From Pelomyxa schiedti (taxonomy: Eukaryota > Protista > Evosea), in contig JAHLWZ010000681.1 of assembly GCA_020536535.1 (NCBI GenBank), positions 1 through 48,695 on the forward strand: a stretch of 48,695 bases of DNA, given 5' to 3'. How positions within the stretch are numbered: position 1 is the stretch's first letter; the number at the start of each line of letters is the position of its first letter. Positions 7,018 to 24,100 of this stretch are shown in pieces. Below the pieces are notes generated by a model. It did no database searches and was not told the DNA's origin. It was given only the letters and a program-made list of their open reading frames with translations. The position numbers and the translations under genes were made by a program.

Positions 7018-10000
7018 TTACATGTTGGCATGTGAAATAACTGCTTGTTGTATCTCAGCACTGAGAGTTTTCACGTTTCTCTTGATTTCTTCTGGGATTC
7101 CAGTAACCCCTCCAGTGATTAGGAGAGTAATATCGTTCACTGGTAACGGCATACAACGAACCGTTTGGTTTACCTGCACAAAAGTTACCTCAAGTAAATC
7201 ACGGAATTCAAACAACTCTAAGGCTTTGGTTAATTGCTGTCAAGCCCATTACTCCAGTCAAGTTATCATCCCAATAAATAGTGCTTAGTGCTGTATTCAA
7301 CTAATGAAAGCGTTACAACAGGAAAAAAAGAATAGGGCAACCTGTAATGTCTTGGAGAGGGCAATAGCGCCATTGTTTCCAAATTGGTGTCCAGAAATGT
7401 CAATTTCATTCATGGATTTATTGTGTGCCAGAGATTGAATAAAGGGAAGAATGTGCCTGCCTAACTGTTGTGTATTTTTGGGTCCTCCAGCCATTTTAAG
7501 AGCTGTTGGTTTTAAATGCGGGGAAAAAGGACTGTAAGGCATACTTTCAATTGGACAATCAGACGCGGCTAGTTTACACATCGCTTTTATCATTGCATCA
7601 CGCTTTGAAGCTTTACTGAAGCCAAACGATGAGTTGATGTTCAGGGAATTCAATGTTGTATTTATCAGAAGACCCTCAACAAGGAGCGTGATCCCATCAT
7701 CACCCTTTCAGAGAAAGTCAGATTTTACAAACTTTTGGACTAACCAGGTCGGAATCCGCAAGGTCAATGTGAGTGACACCAGTAAGCTTTGGTGCTAGGC
7801 AGAATTAGGAATTAGAATTGCCATTCCAATTAGCATTGTGTCTTACCAATTGTGTTCAAGAGCTGTGCGCCAGATATGGGAATTGAGTTGGTAGATACGT
7901 TGAGTTTCATACTTCCTTCTTTTGGGGTGGCTTGAAGAATATCCTACAAACTTAAGTTCTAAAAATATGGTGACAAGTATAAACCTGAAGAACGGCATGA
8001 GTACCAATAGATCCGCTAAGATTTAGCTCCGTCAAAGTTCCCATTAATTGTGTAATATTACTGGATTCTTCAATTTTGGACATCTTCACTGTAACATGTT
8101 GAAAACAAGAAGGACTATTAGCAGCTTACATGCACCAAGTTCTAATGTTGTCAGACTCCTGCATCCCTTGGCAATGGAAGAGAGTAGATTCATCAACTTT
8201 TGGCCTGTCACAGAGGTGTACCCAACATTCAAGTATTTCAAAGTGTGCTGTCCTGAGGCTAGCCATTGTGATATTTGTGTTATTGCGTCTCCAAACCGGT
8301 TATGGGAGATGTCAAGTTGGCATATATGACAAGAGCCCTTCATCTAAAATGTAACATTAGTTTCCAACCACTTTGGGGAGGGTTGTTAAACTTTAAAAGA
8401 ACTGAAAAGGGCAGTAGCAAAGCTAATCCACGCTTTGGTATTAGAGCAAATGTTCGACATATTCAGCGAGATGATTCCTTTGGGAGCTTGGGTTGAGACA
8501 AGGTACAGGCCCAATGCTGTGAGGGCTTTGTCTTCCAGGTAATTGTTATCACTGATATCGATTGACTCGATAATGCACTGAAGAACATTAGGCCATAAAA
8601 TTTCTAACATAAGAGACTTGTTGATTGTTGGCCATAGCTTCAAAAAGTGTAGTAAAGCCACGATCAGAGAGGGACACGTTAACAAGTGATAGAGATGTAA
8701 GTGTGTTATTGAGTCTTAACATTTCCGACAGTGCTCCAAGGGCTTTGTCAACCTTGGTATCTTTAATCACCAGTGATAAAAAGTAGGAATTGTGCCTAGG
8801 AAAACGTCACTACGACGCAAGCAAAGAGAGGAAAAACCATATGGCTTGCAAAATGGGAACAAGGTAAGATGTTGCTGTTGCCATTAGTGATGTAGCAACG
8901 ATATTTGTTGGTTCTTCCACTTCATCTATTGGGGGAATCATTTTCTAGAGTCCGTGTGGGGATGAATACCAGAAAAGAAACAAGAAATATCAAAGTTTCG
9001 ATTGTTGGAGTACAAGTTTTCAATGTCCCAACATAAAGACGAATTGACAGGCACATTATGATAATTGCACATTGCTTTGTATGTGCCAACAAAACCACCA
9101 CATATTGCAAGTCCAGGAGCGTCAATAGTCTCGATCCTTAAAGGGAATGAAAAAAAAAGGTTTGGTCCCAATTCTTTGCCTTGACACAGGAGTGATATTC
9201 AGCTTAAATCGGAATTCCTCTGGTATACCAGAGAAGTTATATAAGAAAGCTCGCCTGATACAAAAAATGATTTCATCAGCTTGATCAGTTTCTCCCGAAA
9301 TTTCAAAGCTTTTAAAGACAAGTTTAACCTAAAAAGGGACATATCAGAGCCACCGATACAAATATATACCTCTGTTGGAGTGTTACTGCTTAATTCGACA
9401 AGATCTAGGGAATGCCCCTCTTTCAGTAACTTGACAAATGTTAACAGAGATAAATATCAATGGAGGCAGAAAAACCTTGCCACCCTTCTTCATAGTGAAA
9501 ATTCTGTTCATACCAATGATAAGTATGATTTTCTTGACGACAGATTTGGTTTTAGATATCGTGAGCCATCCTATGTAGGAAGCTTCCTCCTGCCTCTGGG
9601 TAAGCATCTCCTTGACATGCTCTGATTTGTTTTAAAAAAAATCCCAGAGAAGAAAAGAAAGTACTTTGTTCAGCAGCAGCCAGTGTCGAAGCAAATGAAA
9701 CCTTGCTAGAATACGAACCTAGTGCATCTATTTTCTCCTCTAGTTCTATTACAGTTTGTTTCAGGAATCTTTGCTTAGAAAGATGCAGAGATACCTCTTC
9801 TGTCCACTGTAACGTGCGTAAGCAGTGCAACCTTATGCTGTGAAAGTAGCATATGCAAAAGATGCAAATCTTTTACACTTACAACACAGAGGTCTGAATC
9901 TAAAAGAAAGTGACTTCAGAGATTACGTTGTTTACTGCACACCAATGACAAGATTTGTTGATGTAGTTGAAGCAGCTGCTAGAATTTGTTTGAAATACCC

Positions 10001-11570
10001 GTGCAAGACAGGTGCCTTTTCCGTAATATAAGCATTTAGACATTGCATAAACGCCTCCTTTCCCTTGAATGTGTTACCATTCGAGAGGTTCTGTGTTCAA
10101 GTTAACAAGAAGTATAGGAGCATTGAGGTGAAAGTAAACCTGAAGCACTTTCGTTATGAGAATGAGATTTCTTCGAGTTTTTGGAGATGCAGCCTTTCCT
10201 TTTGGAAGAAGGCCATACTGCTCTGGTGAAAAAATCGGAGGGTTAAAGTATCTGTTTGGGTATATAAGTTCATTGTGTAGTACAACAAATGAGAAAACCG
10301 AAGCATGAGGAAACTGCCGACAATGGGGAGGAAGTTGATGTCCGGGTAATACTGCTTTGAAAGTTCGGAAAAGAACAGTGCAATTATCCTGGAACGCGGG
10401 AAAAGGGACTATTAGGAGACCATAGTACGATATGGGTCATTATTATACTTGATTCCTGGAGGCATTTTGTCGATGTTGGAGGTGGATGTGAGCTTGGTCA
10501 GGAAACTTTCAACTTTAGCAAGAAGAAGACTCTTATTTGTTTCAATCTCCTCTGGATTTTCGACCTTACTACAACGAGAAACATTGAGCACAGATAGCAA
10601 TAATAAAAACGGACCTAGGGTCAACTTCATAGGTAAGTTTCCTGTCAGTTATACAAATCTCGTGCAACGTGGGGCCAAGAATATCCGTAAGGTATTTGCT
10701 GCCAACTTTTCCTATGTACAAGTTGAATAATTGCAATGCCAATGTAGGTTTTTTCCTCACTCAGATAAGATTTAATGATTTTCGTGGCAATTGAATTTTC
10801 TCTGAATAAGGAACCAGGGTAGGATGCTGAATGCTGTTCAAATTCCGCTTGAATAAAATAACGAACAAAACTGTGAATTGTCGTTAGTATTTTTTGTGTT
10901 TGGTTAGGAGGAGAGCAGGGATTACGGCAAGGTAGTGGAACGAGCAAACGTCATTGTTAACAAAGAATCTGCAATGTCTTCCCATTGATCTTTATTTTCG
11001 CACAAGTTGAAAAATTGAGGCAGAACGCTTTTTGAGAAACAGGTTAATTACTTCGTAGTATATTTTGACCCATAAGCGTCCTCCCCTCTCAACCCCAAAC
11101 ATTCCCAAAAAAAAAAAACCCACAGGCTCAAACAGGCCCCCACAACAACACGAACAATCCCATAACACACTCCCACTCATCACACGCGCACACCTAGGAC
11201 ACTTTGTGATGAAAAAGTGGAAGATGTCCTGCAGCAAGTCGCTCTCCCTGGGGCTGTACATCAAGTTGCCCTGCTGTTGCTTGTCCACCGTGGTGTCCGG
11301 CACCGTCGACGTCCTCGTCGGCTGGTAGAACACCACCGTGCGTCTCTTGTGGCTCCTCTCCTCCGCGTACGCCGTCGTCCCGCTCGGCGTCGCTGCTGCT
11401 GCCGCCGTTGCCGTCGCCGTCGCCGTGGCTGCGGCTGCTGCTGCTGTCGAGGAGGACGACGACGAAGTGGAAAGGGCCGATGAGGACGGCGACGAAGACG
11501 CCGAGGAGGAGGACGATGTGGGCTGCTGCGTGGTGGTAGATCCAAGGACCGAGGCTGAGGGACTGGACAT
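7018..11570 (-). CDS. RasGAP domain fused to CARMIL-type PH domain and leucine-rich repeats (>20 exons)
   Basis: RasGAP: SLFRENSIATK, LMLR|YFNPPIFSPE, RRNLILITKVLQ|NLSN. PH: KKIILIIGMNRIF. CARMIL linker: CGGFVGTYKAMCNY..LCWDIENLY. LRRs: LTSLSL, IDISDN, LDISHNRFG, IDISGHQFGNNGAIAL, and MPLPVNDI at the end. One junction between GAP and PH is ambiguous. Confidence 0.82.
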
Positions 11571-16464: not shown

Positions 16465-17937
16465 ATGACAGCGTCAGCTTCAGACAAGAAGGGCGCCAAG
16501 GCCCCGCCTGCTGACTCTAAGCCAGAAAAGGCAGACGCCAAGGCTGATTCCAAGGTTGGCGACAATTTACCAAAGAATTCGCTCTTCTTGCTACACTTCA
16601 CGTGTTCCGTATTGTTTTAAAAATAAATAGGCCAAGAAAGATGATGCTAAGCCAGCAAAAGAACCTGCCACAAAGTCGTCATCCAAAACTGACAAGACCA
16701 CTGGGAAATCTGGCAAAAAAGCCGATAGTGATAGTGGAAGTGACAAGGAGTCAAGTGAGAAGTCTAAGTCAACTAAAAAGCCAGCCAAGTCCGACAAAAC
16801 AGAGAAGGGGAAGGACAAAGCCGACAAAGCAGAAAAAGGTGATGGGGAAAAGGCTGCACCCAAAGGAAGGGGAAGAGGCGGTGCGCAATCTTTTTTTTTT
16901 TTCTTTCTCCTCTCATCTTTCTCTAGGTAAAAAGAAGAAACCAGCTGGTCCCCCAAAGCCCAAAGTAAAACTAACCGAGGAGCAAAAGAGAGAGCAGAAA
17001 AAAAAGCACCGAGAGAAGGAGATTGCAAGGCTGAAAGAGGCTCAAGGTAACCTGTTGCAAAATGTTACTGAAGGCCGTATTCCTAAGCCCGTTCGCAAGG
17101 TTAACTTCATTCAACCCAATCATGCCTAACCTCCAAAAATAGTTGAGTCTGTGCCCCAGTAAGGAAAATCCTCAGGGATACATTGATGTCACAGTAGATA
17201 GCGTAATTGTTCTCCCATTGTTTTTTCTTCGCCCTAAGAAAATGTAGAAGGACTTACCAAGGTCCCCACCAAGAAAGACGAAGCCAAGGACAAGGAAAGC
17301 AAAGAAACACCACAAACACTCCTCCTCCAGTGAAGAAGAGGAAAAACCCAAGAGTAAGAAGCACCATCACCACCACCATCACAAGAAGAGTGATGACGAG
17401 GAGGAAGAAGATAAACCCGCCAGCAAAGCAGATAGTGAGGCACTCGAACCCGAGAAGCCCGAAGGAGCGGCTTCAAAGGGGAAGACAAAAAAACCAAAGA
17501 AGGAGGACGCTCCCGAGGAAGCTCCGGAAAAGGAAAGTTCAGAGGAAGCTCCCGCTAAACCTGAAAAACCCAAATCGGCTGAGGCTGCCCCAGCTGACAA
17601 AACTGTAAAGGATGCTCCCAAGGCAGACAAGGCCGATAAAGCAGATAAGGCGGACACAAAAGCTGATAAAGCAGATAAAGCAGACAAGGCGGACACAAAA
17701 GCAGACAAGGCTGACACAAAAGCAGACAAGGCGGACACAAAAGCAGACAAGACTGACAAAGCCGACAAATCAGACAAAGCCGATAAAGCTGATAAGTCAG
17801 ATAAAGTACTTCCAGAGAAGCGAAAGGAACCGGCGAAGGCCCCAGAGAAGTCCGACAAGCCAGAGCCACCCAAAGAGGCCGCACCCGAGGAAGAAGCTAA
17901 ACCCGGCGCTGCTAAGAAGCCAAGAACCAAGTCCTGA
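16465..17937 (+). CDS. Lys/Ala/Asp/Glu-rich low-complexity protein with ADK repeats
   Basis: ATG at 16465 (MTASASDKKGAK); four GT-AG introns; the final exon reads ...KHHHHHHKKSDDEEEED...(ADK/ADTK)n...KKPRTKS*. This frame is missing from the ORF track. Confidence 0.75.
17623..17805 (+). repeat. Coding tandem repeat GCnGAyAAr / GCGGACACAAAA (ADK, ADTK units)
   Basis: Read directly: gcagacaag gccgataaa gcagataag gcggacacaaaa and further copies. Confidence 0.9.
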
Positions 17938-18250: not shown

Positions 18251-20983
18251 ATGCAACCGTACACGAGCGACCCACAACCTGTCCCACCCGTGGGGTCTGA
18301 GACCGCTGCCCCAGTCCAAAACGCAGCGCCCGTGGTGCCTTACTTCGGGGTGCCTCTAGGGCGAGTTATGGGAGCGGACGGGGCCCTCCCCGAGCCTGTC
18401 GTGCAAGTCCTCTACGTGCTTGAGTGTTGTGTTCCTGCTCAGGAAGATCTGTTCGATCTGTCAGCAAACACACCCAACTTGGCCGAACACCCCAAACTCA
18501 AGGAATTACGTCATGCATTTGACACTGGTGTGGAAAATCCCTTGGCTGAGGTTCTAATTCTTACCTTCTCTTCAACCCCTGCCAATTCCACGTTTATTAA
18601 TGAATATCTTGGTTTCTCTCTCTCTTTTTTTTTTTCTCCCTCCCTCTGTGAATATGGCAGGAAGGTGATCCACAAGTAGTTGCAGCACTTCTTGTTTTGT
18701 ACCTTCGCATGCTGCCACATCCAGTAATACCTCCAAAGTACTACTTTACTTATCTGAGGCTTTCAGCAATTCCATCTCCTTGGGCAAGATTTAGGCAAAT
18801 GAGAGTTTTGACAAACAAACTGCCTACCATTGCGAAAGTACTTACACTCCGGTTGCTCAACTTCTTGCACTCCACTGAATTGGACAAGAATAAACTAGCA
18901 GGAGTCTTCTCCAAGTACATGCTGCGTCCAACTTTGGAACTGCCTCCTGAGCACATTCCAATCCCGCAACCAGTCAACAGAATTATTGCTGACATGATAG
19001 AGCAAGCTGACTATCTTTCCCTTTCTATGGAAGAGCCTATTGTTACTGACCCTGCACCCCCAGCTGAACCTCCTAATGAGTTCAAGCTTGTTGGATTTGC
19101 CATGTACGATTTTGATGGTCAGGGTGCGTAATAACTTTCTTGGGTTAATTCATGCCAAATGCATCCAGGTGCTTCTGGTGTTCTTTCTTTCCATGCAGGT
19201 GATCGTATACAATTGATCAATGCTTATCAAGATGATTGGCTAGAGGGCATAATTAACGGTTCTCCTGGATTTGTGCCATCTGGATATATAGAACTTATTC
19301 CAATGTCTCCCCCTAATCCCACTGGACGTGGTGGCAAAGTGCAGGGTACCCCTCCCCCTATGCCCACTGCCATCCCCCCTCCAGTGTCCATACCATCGGT
19401 AGAACCACCAATTTTACCCCCGGTCTCTCCCTCACTATCTCCTACCCCAACACAGCTCACTCCAGCTCCAATTCAACCCACTCCTACAGTAATAGAGGAA
19501 CCCCCAGCTACGTTAATTCCATCGGAACCTATTCCATTACCACCGGACCTCCCAGCCATTCCACTACCTCCTCCCATGCCCATCTTCCCTCCAATCGATA
19601 TCCCAATTGACATTCCCAATTTACCAGCTCCAATGGCCCCAGCGCCTCCTGCACCAACTCCAAAATCTGCACCCGCCCAGGCACCTACCCAAACTTCGCA
19701 AGCACCAACGCCAACTCCACAGGCACCAACACCAACTCCACAATCATCAACACCCCACTATCAACCACCTCCACCACAACCAGTGTATAATCCTACAACA
19801 TCAACTTATCAAACATCATCACAACCCACTCAATATCAGTCATACCCAAGTACCACACAATTATCTTCAACGCCACCACAACAGCAAGTGCAGGTGCAGG
19901 TGCAAGTGCAAGTTCAGGTCCAACAGCCCCAACAACAGCAACAAGGGGTACCTCCACCGCAACTCACTCAGCCACTGAATCAATCACAGTCCCTTACAAT
20001 TGAATATCCCCATGCTCAAGTGTCTACAAGTGCAGCCGACGCTGTATGTAACTTTTGACAACTTTCCCTCCAACTAAAACTTCCATACAAGAATTATGAG
20101 CCCCTTCCTTCAAAGGCGCCTCCTCCAGTGAGCCACAAGACACCCGGCAAAGTTCCAAATCCCGATGAGTGTGGGGAGAGTAATCACATCGTAGTAGTTG
20201 TTGGAAGTGGTGGTGTGGGTATGTTTGAGTGTTTTTATACTTGCAGTTATTAATTCTTCTAGGAAAATCCGCTCTTACAATTGCCTTTGTACAACATAGT
20301 TTTGTAGAAACATACGACCCGGTATATGTTCCATCGGTTCTTTTTCTCATCAACTTATACACTACTACAGACAATTGAGGTATTGAGCACAGTTTCATTG
20401 AAGTTATTGATCGAACTTCCAATTAGGACTCTTACCGACAGCAAGTCGTTGTAGATGACGCATCAAGTGTTTTGGATATTCTTGATACCGCTGGTACATT
20501 TCTCGTTTTATCTTGCTATTTTTTTTTTTTTAACCAAATTCTCCACTAGGTCAGGAAGAATTCAGTGCTATGAGGTAGAAGGCTTATTTTCCCCTTTCTC
20601 CCATAATTACTCGCTAACACCGTTAACCAAGGGACAAATACATGCATACGGGGCACGGCTTCATCCTCGTTTTCGCGCTGACTTCAGCCTCGTCGTTCCA
20701 CGAAATTCCCGATCTGCACACCCACATCCTCCAAGTCAAAGACGCGGACTTTGTGCCCCTCGTTCTCGTTGGAAACAAGTGCGATCTGTACGACCAAATA
20801 GAGGTTAGCATAGCCGACGCGACCAAGTTCGCCCAGTCGATCAACGCGCCCTTCTTCAAATCCAGTGCCAAGCTAAACATCAACGTGGATGAGAGTTTCC
20901 ACCAACTTGTGCGCATCATTCGCCAGCACCGCGCCAAACAAAACACTGGCAAGCCAAAGAGAAAGCTATGCCGACTACTCTGA
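18251..20983 (+). CDS. Multidomain protein: RhoGAP-like (no Arg finger) - SH3 - Pro/Gln-rich linker - Ras GTPase with CAAX
   Basis: RhoGAP: FGVPLG..LPEPV..EDLFD..VAALLVLYLRMLPHPVIP. SH3: AMYDFDGQGASGVLSFHAGD..DWLEG..GFVPSGYI. Ras: GSGGVGKS, YDPTIEDSY, DTAGQEEF, NKCD, SAK, C-terminal CRLL*. All joined by GT-AG introns. Confidence 0.88.
19885..19920 (+). repeat. (CARGTN)6 coding repeat giving (QV)6
   Basis: caagtg caggtg caggtg caagtg caagtt caggtc, in the frame of ORF 19159..20058. Confidence 0.85.
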
Positions 20984-21182: not shown

Positions 21183-24100
21183 ATGGCGAGCAGTGATGCC
21201 ACAGCGTCTGCGGCAACAATGTCGCGTAGATCTGCGGCGCAACCGCACTCGGCAGTGGAACGTGCATTTTATGCTGTGGCATCGTGGGTTCCTTCGCCAA
21301 AGGGCGACGACGCCACTCCCGAATCTCCTTCGCCGGCAGCCCCCAGCGCGAACGGGAACGGAAAACGCATTTTGGGAATGCCCAGAATCATCGCCACTGT
21401 GGTGGGCGTAATGCTTTTTGATTTGGGCCTTTCCATCGGCCTCTACAAGTTATTCGAGCCGGCGCGGTGCGGGGCACTTGCAACCGTTCTGCAGGAAAAT
21501 TATGGGAATGGAACACTCACCTCCACCACGACGGCGTATGTGTCAGGGCTGCAATCTTGCACTGATGATTTGGCAACGGATAGCATAATCCGGTGCTTGG
21601 CTTTGGTCGTTGTGTTGGCTGGTGCATGGCTCTTTGCGAGACACCCACAATTTGAACAGTTCCTTCCAGCAGACGTGGACCTGGAGGCTGCTGAAAGTGC
21701 TACAAACAAAAAAACTGGACAGGTACCTACTGGACGCGCGGCAAGGGAACGATTCCTACTTCAAGATAATGAAGACAAAGAAAGAATGCTGGAGGAAGAA
21801 GAAAGGGAAGTCGACCCTTGCACCCGCGCAGAGCGGCTTCGAAGGAGTGCCGTAGTGGCCGCCGACCGGCGGAAGAGATATGCACTAGGGTTTGCATTTG
21901 TAACTTGCACAGTATTTGAAGTCTATGTGGGGATCAAGGCAGTGGTTTTTGACTTCACTTCAGTTGTTCTCATATATCGCCCCCACGTTTAACTGACTGG
22001 TTAACAGGAAAAACTTCAAGCGGTGCAGTTTTGCTTAACTGTTCTTCTCATCAACTTGGAGCTATTTTTTGTATTCAGTGCCGTGGGTTACCTTACCAAA
22101 GATAAAGGACACCTTTTCCCACAAGTACACCATCACCCACTATTTTATGACTACTCTGTCGCTGGGCATAGATGTGAGATTCTTAAACAATGTTATGCTT
22201 TAACAACTTACAGGTGATTTTTGTGGCGGGAGAATAAGGGAGTCCTATAGATGTAATCCTTGTGACTACGACTTGTGCATGTTCTGCTTCAGGTCATCTC
22301 TATGGGCAACAACACCTAATTTCTCAATATCAAATAGAAAGAAAGACAAAAGAAAAGGAGAAAATCAACTTCGGAGTGATTCAGGGGTAAAAGAGACAGA
22401 ACGGCCGTCCAATTATCAGTACCTCACTCGAACCCTCTCTTTCGCGTCATCGAGCACAACCTTGATAATGGGGGCGTTTGCTTTCTTATTGATCTCATCT
22501 CTTTGTCGCCTGCTAACACCCAAGTATGTGGTCTGCTGTCCTGTTCCATTATATCATAGCTTCTGCGTAGCTATCAAGGTCACATCATTGACAACGTGGT
22601 GAAGACTGACTTCGAAGCATTTAAATATTGTATTTTAATGTACATTATCGTTGAAGTTATTGCTGCAGTTTTCGGATCACTCCGTGGCATATGCTTCAAG
22701 TACTCGTCTCCTACTAGAAAAATGTAAATAATACTAATAACAATTAGCATTGTCGCCAGTAAAATCGAAAATGGAATCCGCAACCACATGTTCAGCTCTG
22801 TTCTTATTCAAGATATTGCCTTCTTTGATGGTACAACTTCTGGTGAGGTGACCTCACGCTTGTATGGAGATACTCTTGCCATGGTAGGACCTGCCCAAGG
22901 AATCTTGAGGTGAGATCCCCTCTCTTTTTTCACAGTTATATTTTATCTTATTTATCTTTTCCATTGTGCAGTGAGCTCCTTACCAATGTTATTACCCTTG
23001 TTGGTGGGTTGATAATGTGTCTGGTGACCTCCTGGAAATTATCTCTTCTGGCATTCACAACCATTGGCCCCATTTTACTCATAACCAAATTGTATCTCCC
23101 CGCAAACAATCTTCCAACTCATAAGCAATAGTTATGCTAAATGGTCCCGGCATGTCACGAAGTGAGTTGCCATCTCCTTTCTTCATCTAAGTTGATCCAT
23201 TTTCCAAGGGAGATATGGGCAGCTCTGGGTGATGCCAATGCTGTTGCAGTGCAAGCCATATCCAACATTCGTACTGTGCGAGCTTTTTCTATGGAAAAAA
23301 GAGAAATTAAAGCTTACGGCATGGCTACTTCGGAAGCACTCTCCCAGAGAGTAAAAGTTGTCATCTTACCTAAACATTCCCTTTAACCAAATTCTGCCTA
23401 GGAAGCTATTTTTGGTGCTGGTGCTTTTGCAATCACTAATTCTGTTGATTTGGCAGTCGGCATACTTCTACTGTGCTATGGAGGTATTGTTGCCATGAAC
23501 GACCCGTCCAAGTATACTTTTAAAACAACAAAACCTGCTCCTAATTCAAATAACTTCTGCAAGACTTTCAGTTGGAAATCTTATTACCTTCCAACTTTAT
23601 TGGAACATGTTGAATAACAGCTATAGCTCCATTGCAGGCCAGATTTCTGCCATGGTGCGTGCAGGTGGAGCTGCACAACGGTTTGCACCTCTTAACGTTC
23701 TCTGTCAATGCTTAAAAACTCATAGTGTCATGGGGCTCCTGGAGAACCTCCCTGACATTGACCCCGACTCCGGGATTAAGGCCATTAACCTTGAAGGTTC
23801 CATTGAGTTCCGAAATGTACAGTTCTTTTATCAAATGCGACCCGAAAATATAGTTCTGAAGGATGTCTCTCTTAAGTGTGTCGAATGCTTAATTTGCACA
23901 CCTCACTCTCAATCAAGGATAGAAAGGGGTCAAACATGTGCTATTGTGGGAAGGAGTGGAAGTGGAAAGACAACCCTAATTAACTTGCTTATGCGCTATT
24001 ACGATACTCGAGGGGGTACAATCTTGATTGATGGAGTCAGTCTAAATGAGTGGAACCTGAGAAGTGTTCATGCCCATATGGGCTTAGTTTCTCAAGTACG

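Follow-up and report, generated by a model that had tools for sequence, protein, structure and literature searches.

A Pelomyxa schiedti gene predicted to fuse a RhoGAP-fold domain lacking its arginine finger, an SH3 domain and a complete Ras GTPase

In textbooks, Ras proper stands for the minimal molecular switch, a stand-alone protein of about 190 residues that is wired into its pathways by separate proteins. A 48,695-nucleotide (nt) stretch of DNA from Pelomyxa schiedti (contig JAHLWZ010000681.1, assembly GCA_020536535.1; the whole stretch is hereafter called the window) raises the question of whether such a switch can also be encoded together with adaptor parts in a single chain, and of what those parts would do there. 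At positions 18251 to 20983, an original prediction had placed one gene in which a RhoGAP-like domain, an SH3 domain and a proline-rich linker precede a complete, prenylatable Ras GTPase, with a total length of approximately 750 residues. The gene model used here was built by hand from the sequence, and Pfam was run on the exon translations. The best explanation overall, which we regard as probable though well short of certain, is that the locus is one fusion gene and that its product would be a self-scaffolded, membrane-anchored Ras with a non-catalytic binding or targeting cassette. The predicted length was of the right order and is now refined to 758 residues, compared to about 190 for the stand-alone members of the Ras subfamily. 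The features on which the continuity of the gene depends are as follows.

18251-20983, forward strand: whole coding region, with nine exons, eight GT-AG introns and a coding sequence of 2277 nt that specifies 758 residues and a stop codon
18251-18550, 18661-19123, 19169-20043, 20092-20218, 20263-20321, 20371-20379, 20427-20493, 20550-20574 and 20632-20983, forward strand: the nine exons
20044-20091, forward strand: intron 3, 48 nt, phase 0, beginning with GTATGT and ending with AG, which joins the linker exon to the Ras exon
20098-20127, forward strand: pre-Ras motif EPLPSKAPPP, just 3' of the intron 3 acceptor; it can be compared with EPPPPSKAPPP in the orthologous locus L001 and APPSKPP in the Mastigella protein P0011, both described below

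The linker exon terminates with ...SAADA at the GTATGT donor (20044), the sole AG of intron 3 is located at 20090-91, and the reading frame past the intron is NYEPLPSKAPPP...NHIVVVVGSGGVG, which leads into Ras. The same donor, 48-nt intron, acceptor at 20091 and continuing frame had been proposed originally. The intron length is a multiple of three, and the sole in-frame stop between the linker and Ras exons, a TGA at 20056-58, is intronic. Frame inspection of the window found no in-frame ATG between this TGA and the P-loop. The nearby ATG at 20096 is out of frame and reaches a stop after 11 codons, in agreement with the earlier statement that the Ras exon has no in-frame ATG of its own. A stand-alone Ras cannot start here, because the P-loop has no in-frame ATG ahead of it and the Ras domain reaches its first Met only past switch II.

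The same arrangement is found in relatives, some of which display it without an intron at the critical junction. A first search, with the last Ras exon as query, gave seven candidates, one of which led to an orthologous locus (L001) on a contig of the ENA assembly ERZ21831265, where an open reading frame (ORF) is 65% identical to the last Ras exon of the window. At this locus, one uninterrupted ORF of 637 residues (7805-9718) contains the RhoGAP-like N-terminus, the SH3 domain, the Pro/Gln linker and ...EPPPPSKAPPP...YIIVVVGSGGVG, the last including the P-loop. No splicing needs to be inferred in L001, because the linker and P-loop occupy one exon. The complete L001 gene model has eight exons and encodes 779 residues with the C-terminus CIFL; the window protein model is collinear with it at 51% identity, and the two genes have five intron positions and phases in common, including those of a 9-nt microexon. 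Four more genomic loci with the fusion arrangement were found, namely L005 and L007 in the same assembly as L001, L003 in another assembly, and L009 on a 59.6-kb environmental contig, where the whole 621-residue fusion is a single intronless genomic ORF. In addition, a 1979-nt contig from a sequencing run (L006), with an ORF of 647 residues, matches genomic L007 with 100% identity over eight blocks, and the seven gaps between them are GT-AG gaps of 38-44 nt. L006 can be regarded as the spliced mRNA of a fused gene, because its exact blocks match L007 around GT-AG gaps. A phase-0 intron precedes the P-loop glycine by 36 residues in L007 and by 38 residues in the window (intron 3), and this linker/Ras intron of L007 is spliced out of the mRNA-like contig L006.

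When 1.84 billion representative proteins were searched exhaustively with HMMER, with exon 2 as query, only 68 matches reached E<=1e-3, of which 26 reached E<=1e-10, and the combination of RhoGAP, SH3 and Ras was confirmed by Pfam in eight distinct proteins related to these matches. Among these eight, three Pelomyxa schiedti proteins annotated as 'Ras GTPase' or 'ras family small GTPase' (KAH3758015.1, KAH3744992.1 and KAH3744949.1) carry the fusion, and Trinity transcripts of Mastigella eilhardi (EukProt EP01105, TRINITY_DN343_c0_g1) encode it in full. The domain order of pseudoGAP (the RhoGAP-fold domain examined below), SH3, linker, Ras and CaaX box is kept in 10 relatives. Word-indexed protein searches with full-length relatives as queries recovered the Mastigella protein alone, and a description of a pseudoGAP-SH3-Ras fusion was not found in the literature. 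Collectively, the ORFs of L001 and L009, the L006 mRNA, and the archamoeba transcripts and proteins bear out the claim that one gene joins the RhoGAP-like domain, SH3 domain, linker and prenylatable Ras. We can conclude that the fusion family is real, small, conserved, rare and uncharacterised, that it occurs in archamoebid-type anaerobic amoebae, and that it is a rare multidomain Ras and not a one-off. The architecture had not been recognised when it was proposed; this impression was correct insofar as the architecture is rare, uncharacterised and without a description in the literature searched, but it is not unique and is already represented in public proteomes.

The Ras part of the window protein is composed of the following elements.

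20182-20941, forward strand: Ras G domain, residues 577-745 (577-758 with the tail), distributed over six exons; Pfam Ras (PF00071) E=2.3e-24 on the last exon
20203-20270, forward strand: G1 motif GSGGVGKS, residues 584-591, with the equivalents of Gly12 and Gly13 present
20313-20435, forward strand: effector loop YDPTIEDSY, with the equivalent of Thr35
20484-20557, forward strand: G3 motif DTAGQE, with the equivalent of Gln61 (switch II)
20774-20785, forward strand: G4 motif NKCD, residues 690-693
20864-20872, forward strand: G5 motif SAK, residues 720-722
20951-20980, forward strand: C-terminal tail, with polybasic KPKRK (20951-20965) and CaaX box CRLL (20969-20980), followed by the stop codon (20981-20983)

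Judged by its sequence, the C-terminal part is a complete Ras-subfamily G domain in which the nucleotide-binding and catalytic motifs are intact. All of the elements that had been listed as intact (G1-G5, Q61, YDPTIEDSY and CRLL) are present, and the P-loop glycines, VGKS, Thr35, Gln61, NKxD, SAK and the CaaX cysteine are invariant in nine of nine fused relatives. Position 61 is Gln, as expected of Ras, and not the Thr that would indicate Rap, and the closest solved structures to the Ras domain are those of R-Ras, R-Ras2, M-Ras and K/H-Ras. At the C-terminus, a CaaX box follows basic residues in each of 10 fused relatives. CaaX boxes ending in Leu lead to geranylgeranylation, and since the CaaX box of the window protein has this ending, its CRLL tail predicts a geranylgeranyl group and membrane anchoring.

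The N-terminal part poses a different question, namely whether a domain that resembles a GTPase-activating protein (GAP) could act as one.

18326-19089, forward strand: pseudoGAP domain, residues 26-243, broken by intron 1; Pfam RhoGAP (PF00620) E=3.2e-9, on exon 2
18455-18457, forward strand: codon of Asp69 (motif EDLFDLS), which stands where the arginine finger would be, as located by the family profile aligned to 5irc and 2ee4
18688-18744, forward strand: clade motif LLVLYLRMLPHPVIPPKYY, within the pseudoGAP domain; its general form is LPHPxIPPK(F/Y)Y

The domain is predicted to adopt the all-helical RhoGAP/BH fold. A profile of the family N-terminus matches 43 RhoGAP/BH sequences of the PDB over approximately 190 positions; the best match is p190A (p190RhoGAP; 5irc, E=8e-16), followed by ARHGAP5 (2ee4), ARHGAP15 and DLC1, and the matches to the finger-less OCRL and p85 BH domains are weaker. 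An AlphaFold 2 (AF2) model of the RhoGAP-like domain of L001 has a predicted local distance difference test (pLDDT) score of 87.7 and a predicted template modelling (pTM) score of 0.81, and the 50 best PDB matches obtained with this model in Foldseek are all RhoGAP/BH, with template modelling (TM) scores of 0.38-0.79 normalised to target length. In canonical RhoGAPs the finger lies in GxFRxSG; the profile places its Arg, in the form G(I/L)YRVSG, on the residue that follows the conserved (D)LF. This column contains Asp69 in the window protein and D, L, A, S, T or E across the clade, whereas it contains R in the canonical RhoGAPs of the same search. The Lys and Asn that support the transition state in canonical RhoGAPs are affected as well: the Lys of LLKxxLRxLPEPL (LLKLY) is replaced by V, L or I across the clade, and the Asn of NLAxxFxP is not conserved. 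The canonical RhoGAPs among the weakest matches of this search retain the finger Arg, the Lys and the Asn. Because the finger Arg has been lost with the accompanying Lys and Asn, the N-terminal domain appears to be a catalytically dead pseudoGAP throughout the clade, and stimulation of GTP hydrolysis on Rho-family GTPases is predicted to be absent. With the arginine finger gone, the earlier choice of the term 'Rho-binding' instead of 'GAP' was a prudent one.

Between the pseudoGAP and the G domain, there are an SH3 domain and a long linker of low complexity.

19099-19317, forward strand: SH3 domain, approximately residues 247-304, split by intron 2; Pfam SH3 (PF00018/PF14604) on exon 3, with SH3_9 E=7.7e-8, SH3_1 E=5.6e-5, and SH3_2
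19231-19248, forward strand: ligand-binding Trp of the SH3 domain, in DDWLEG
within 19267-19299, forward strand: Pro and Tyr of the SH3 domain, in GFVPSGY
19318-20181, forward strand: low-complexity linker, residues 305-576 (scored over residues 301-576, which are 276 residues), interrupted by intron 3

The SH3 domain starts within about 25 residues of the pseudoGAP domain and has its ALYDY-type motif in the form of AMYDF; its ligand-binding Trp and Pro are unchanged in all nine fused relatives compared. The linker of the window protein consists of 28.6% Pro and 12.7% Gln and has 19 PxxP motifs, and no canonical class I or II SH3 ligand was found in it. Among the relatives, linkers range from 109 to 303 residues, and neither length nor composition is conserved; some are rich in Ser, Asn and Gly without any PxxP, and the number of PxxP motifs per linker varies across the family from 0 to 19. 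The only short linker motif common to the window protein, L001 and Mastigella is PPSK(A)PP before the G domain. The proposal of intramolecular autoinhibition between SH3 and PxxP has to be abandoned as a conserved feature, in view of this range of PxxP numbers and of a window linker without a class I or II ligand. The linker is a flexible, disordered tether of about 280 residues between the two halves of the protein. Two repeats were also seen within it, a GTGCAG-type repeat at 19884-19923 that encodes QVQVQVQVQV and a 21-nt unit at 19681-19754 that encodes (A/S)PTPTPQ, and they fit a fast-evolving, slippage-prone linker.

What the cassette might contribute to Ras can be approached through sister proteins in which the finger-less RhoGAP-SH3 cassette is attached to other C-terminal parts. 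In P0028, P0030, P0031 and P0034, it is joined to a C-terminal DH-PH RhoGEF, and in P0027 and Pelomyxa KAH3732570.1 (P0035) to a WW domain and a tyrosine-kinase-like kinase. It is also joined to a kinase in P0050, which has ankyrin repeats and in which WW was not matched. Because the same cassette is fused to a RhoGEF or a kinase in these proteins, it suggests a portable input or targeting module, for which Ras is one of several outputs (at least three kinds). On the reading that we favour, the G domain of the window protein would switch between its GDP- and GTP-bound states at the membrane, driven by the usual exchange factors and GAPs, while the tethered pseudoGAP-SH3 cassette would bind partners and hydrolyse nothing. 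The dead GAP surface would be likely to receive a Rho-family GTPase in its GTP-bound state, and the SH3 domain proteins with proline motifs. The cassette would thereby either gather its partners where Ras signals or bring Ras to where the partners are. The pseudoGAP probably binds a Rho-family GTPase, since small GTPases are bound by OCRL and the p85 BH domain, whose RhoGAP-like folds also lack the finger, and Ras may in this way be coupled to Rac/Rho signalling.

Several points weigh against this self-scaffolded reading. The proposed binding of Rho-family GTPases is argued by comparison with OCRL and the BH domain of p85. A full-length AF2 model, made for the Mastigella protein from a 9-sequence alignment, reached a pLDDT of 58, with values below 50 in the N-terminal half of Ras, and a fold search with this model was swamped by Ras matches of high root-mean-square deviation. 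Intron 3 of the window was deduced from sequence and homology only, and its retention would yield a Ras-less product of about 550 residues ending at the TGA at 20056-58. Moreover, the fusion need not be the sole product, given that the Mastigella eilhardi Trinity isoforms P0076, P0079 and P0077 include products of 401 and 416 residues that break off in the linker and one that breaks off inside Ras. Such isoforms could be unspliced pre-mRNA or genuine Ras-less isoforms.

The rival explanations differ in how much of this architecture they accept. One of them would divide the locus into two adjacent genes, a RhoGAP-SH3-linker gene ending at the TGA at 20056-58 and a separate downstream Ras. The unspliced frame does stop there, and gene callers blind to introns split the orthologous loci likewise. 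However, such a Ras would have no in-frame ATG before its P-loop and its first Met only beyond switch II, the gap between the two genes would be 48 nt compared to spacers of about 200-315 nt on either side, and the continuous ORF of L001, the intronless ORF of L009, the spliced mRNA L006/L007 and the Mastigella transcripts all run through the junction. We give this explanation hardly any credence. One that accepts the fusion but keeps the N-terminal domain as an active GAP is also quite improbable. In this case, a non-canonical catalytic residue would serve either the protein's own Ras or Rho-family GTPases as substrates; the latter activity would make the protein a RhoGAP tethered to Ras. The RhoGAP fold overall and its LPxPxxP core are well kept, and finger-independent GAP mechanisms exist in other GAP classes such as RapGAP. 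The finger position, however, is occupied by any of D, L, A, S, T and E, the accompanying Lys and Asn are also gone, and no alternative invariant polar residue stands out, the invariant columns being mostly hydrophobic or Pro.

A stronger contender is a switch regulated in cis, in which the pseudoGAP would dock on its own Ras as a decoy GAP or built-in effector, perhaps with contacts between SH3 and linker, so that one nucleotide state of Ras is masked or stabilised by the cassette pending release by a partner. In its favour, at least 10 proteins keep a GTPase-binding fold in the same chain as a GTPase; a dead GAP fold would suit binding without turnover, and PPSK(A)PP stands before Ras in the window protein, L001 and Mastigella. 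On the other side, some linkers of the family lack any PxxP, the full-length model with its pLDDT of 58 gave no structural support, and the fold belongs to the RhoGAP class, not to the RasGAP class. Docking in cis is further disfavoured by the sister proteins, whose RhoGEF or kinase outputs offer the cassette no G domain on which to dock, and we consider it unlikely, though not negligible. A comparably tentative proposal, which we would put forward as a speculation, takes in the sister proteins: the cassette would be a portable, lineage-specific sensor of active Rho-family GTPase, wired directly in archamoebae, inside single chains, to Ras, a RhoGEF or a tyrosine-kinase-like kinase, and the Ras version would be a Rho-to-Ras relay. 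In that version, the dead GAP would deliver Rac/Rho-GTP to the membrane-bound Ras or would clamp its own Ras domain.

The remaining features of the gene model concern its other exon boundaries.

18251-18550, forward strand: exon 1 (residues 1-100), containing the N-terminus and the first half of the RhoGAP-fold domain, with FGVPL at 18344-18358
18551-18660, forward strand: intron 1, 110 nt, GT..AG, without a counterpart in the orthologue L001
19124-19168, forward strand: intron 2, 45 nt, inside the SH3 domain, its acceptor fixed by collinearity with L001 and the Mastigella transcripts
20371-20379, forward strand: microexon of 9 nt, encoding Thr-Ile-Glu of the effector loop, flanked by introns of 47-49 nt; the L001 equivalent is 9827-9835

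Introns of the fusion gene model range from 44 to 110 nt, and all eight are of the GT-AG type. For intron 2, an alternative acceptor at 19198 was considered and rejected, as it would delete the conserved SH3 strand xxVLSFxxGD, whereas 19168 fits the SH3 consensus and the orthologues. The possibility of a pseudogene was ruled out by the open exons, the GT-AG borders at every intron and the intact catalytic motifs. The gene is closely flanked on both sides, with an upstream neighbour that ends at about 17937 and a downstream one that starts at 21183, leaving intergenic spacers of about 200-315 nt. The upstream gene (16600-17937, forward strand) encodes a low-complexity protein rich in Lys, Asp, Glu and Ala, with tandem KADKAD(T) repeats at 17619-17806 in units of 9, 21 and 39 nt, and Pfam made no assignment for it. 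The downstream ORF (21183-21992, forward strand; 269 residues), approximately 200 nt past the Ras stop, has a sequence that suggests hydrophobic segments; it had no Pfam match and is unrelated to the fusion. For six other long ORFs of the window, Pfam gave nothing useful, and Rfam and tRNA scans of the window were empty. Synteny of the flanks between the window and the related loci was not found by tblastx. As for the surroundings of the relatives, the ERZ21831265 assembly holds at least three fusion-gene paralogues, and introns in it are very short and uniform (35-44 nt). A gene with a pyruvate:ferredoxin oxidoreductase domain adjoins L005, which suggests an anaerobic host, and a tRNA-like sequence was noticed by eye just downstream of the orthologous gene in L001 (about 10520-10600, reverse strand).

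The main interest of the locus is that adaptor parts, namely a dead GAP fold, an SH3 domain and a long tether, seem to have been welded onto Ras, with the catalytic residues of the GTPase kept across several amoebae. If the pseudoGAP binds a Rho-family GTPase or its own Ras, the family would offer a ready-made case of Ras-Rho crosstalk, or of self-regulation, built into one protein, and it could also provide a simple system for the reuse of pseudoGAP domains as binding modules. It is thus of relevance to the evolution of Ras/Rho signalling and to pseudoGAP biology. There is a practical aspect as well, since gene callers based on ORFs split the fusion loci into 'RhoGAP' and 'Ras' fragments, and the family is easily missed because of this splitting.

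A comparison with known systems shows which parts of the architecture are familiar. With classical Ras proteins (R-Ras/R-Ras2, M-Ras and K/H/N-Ras), the window protein shares the complete G domain, the YDPTIEDSY loop and a polybasic stretch followed by CaaX as in K-Ras4B, and the Ras domain of the Mastigella orthologue matches classical Ras structures with 175-184 bits. It differs from them in its approximately 575 extra N-terminal residues and in the final Leu of its CaaX box, from which a geranylgeranyl and not a farnesyl group is predicted. The Pelomyxa schiedti and Mastigella eilhardi proteins have the same domain order, finger loss and clade motif LPHPxIPPK as the window protein, whereas their identity in the pseudoGAP region is 35-55% and their linkers are unlike that of the window protein in length and composition. 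To our knowledge, a Rho-to-Ras relay within one protein, if true, would have no counterpart among characterised Ras proteins.

Among proteins with a related N-terminal part, p85 of PI3K likewise brings together an SH3 domain, stretches rich in proline and a BH domain of the RhoGAP fold, which binds small GTPases and does not behave as a classical RhoGAP; this domain is matched by the family profile (1pbw, E=4e-7), and 6d87 is a fold match. In p85, however, the domain order is reversed, SH2 domains are present, and there is neither a G domain nor a lipid anchor. The RhoGAP-like domain of OCRL/INPP5B lacks the catalytic arginine and is a platform for small GTPases and peptide motifs. It shares with the pseudoGAP the finger-less RhoGAP fold (profile match 2qv2, E=5e-8; fold match 3qis), but it belongs to an inositol 5-phosphatase, lies behind an ASH domain and is accompanied by neither SH3 nor Ras. 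In the GRAF/ARHGAP26 family and the srGAPs, a RhoGAP fold is followed by an SH3 domain, as in the window protein, and the GRAF BH domain (1f7c) was matched with E=7e-13; in contrast, these are active GAPs with an arginine finger and an N-terminal BAR or F-BAR domain, and we know of none that ends in a GTPase.

A parallel to the overall layout is offered by another family of GTPases. CRACR2A/Rab46, Rab44 and Rab45 place regulatory or adaptor modules and a proline-rich stretch before a C-terminal, lipid-anchored G domain, but this G domain is of the Rab family and the N-terminal modules are EF-hands and a coiled coil. Finally, a connection between a RhoGAP domain and a Ras-family GTPase exists in RLIP76/RalBP1, which achieves it by binding in trans (PMC3852207). 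Ral is thus bound non-covalently by RLIP76, whereas in the window protein the corresponding parts would be covalently fused in one chain.

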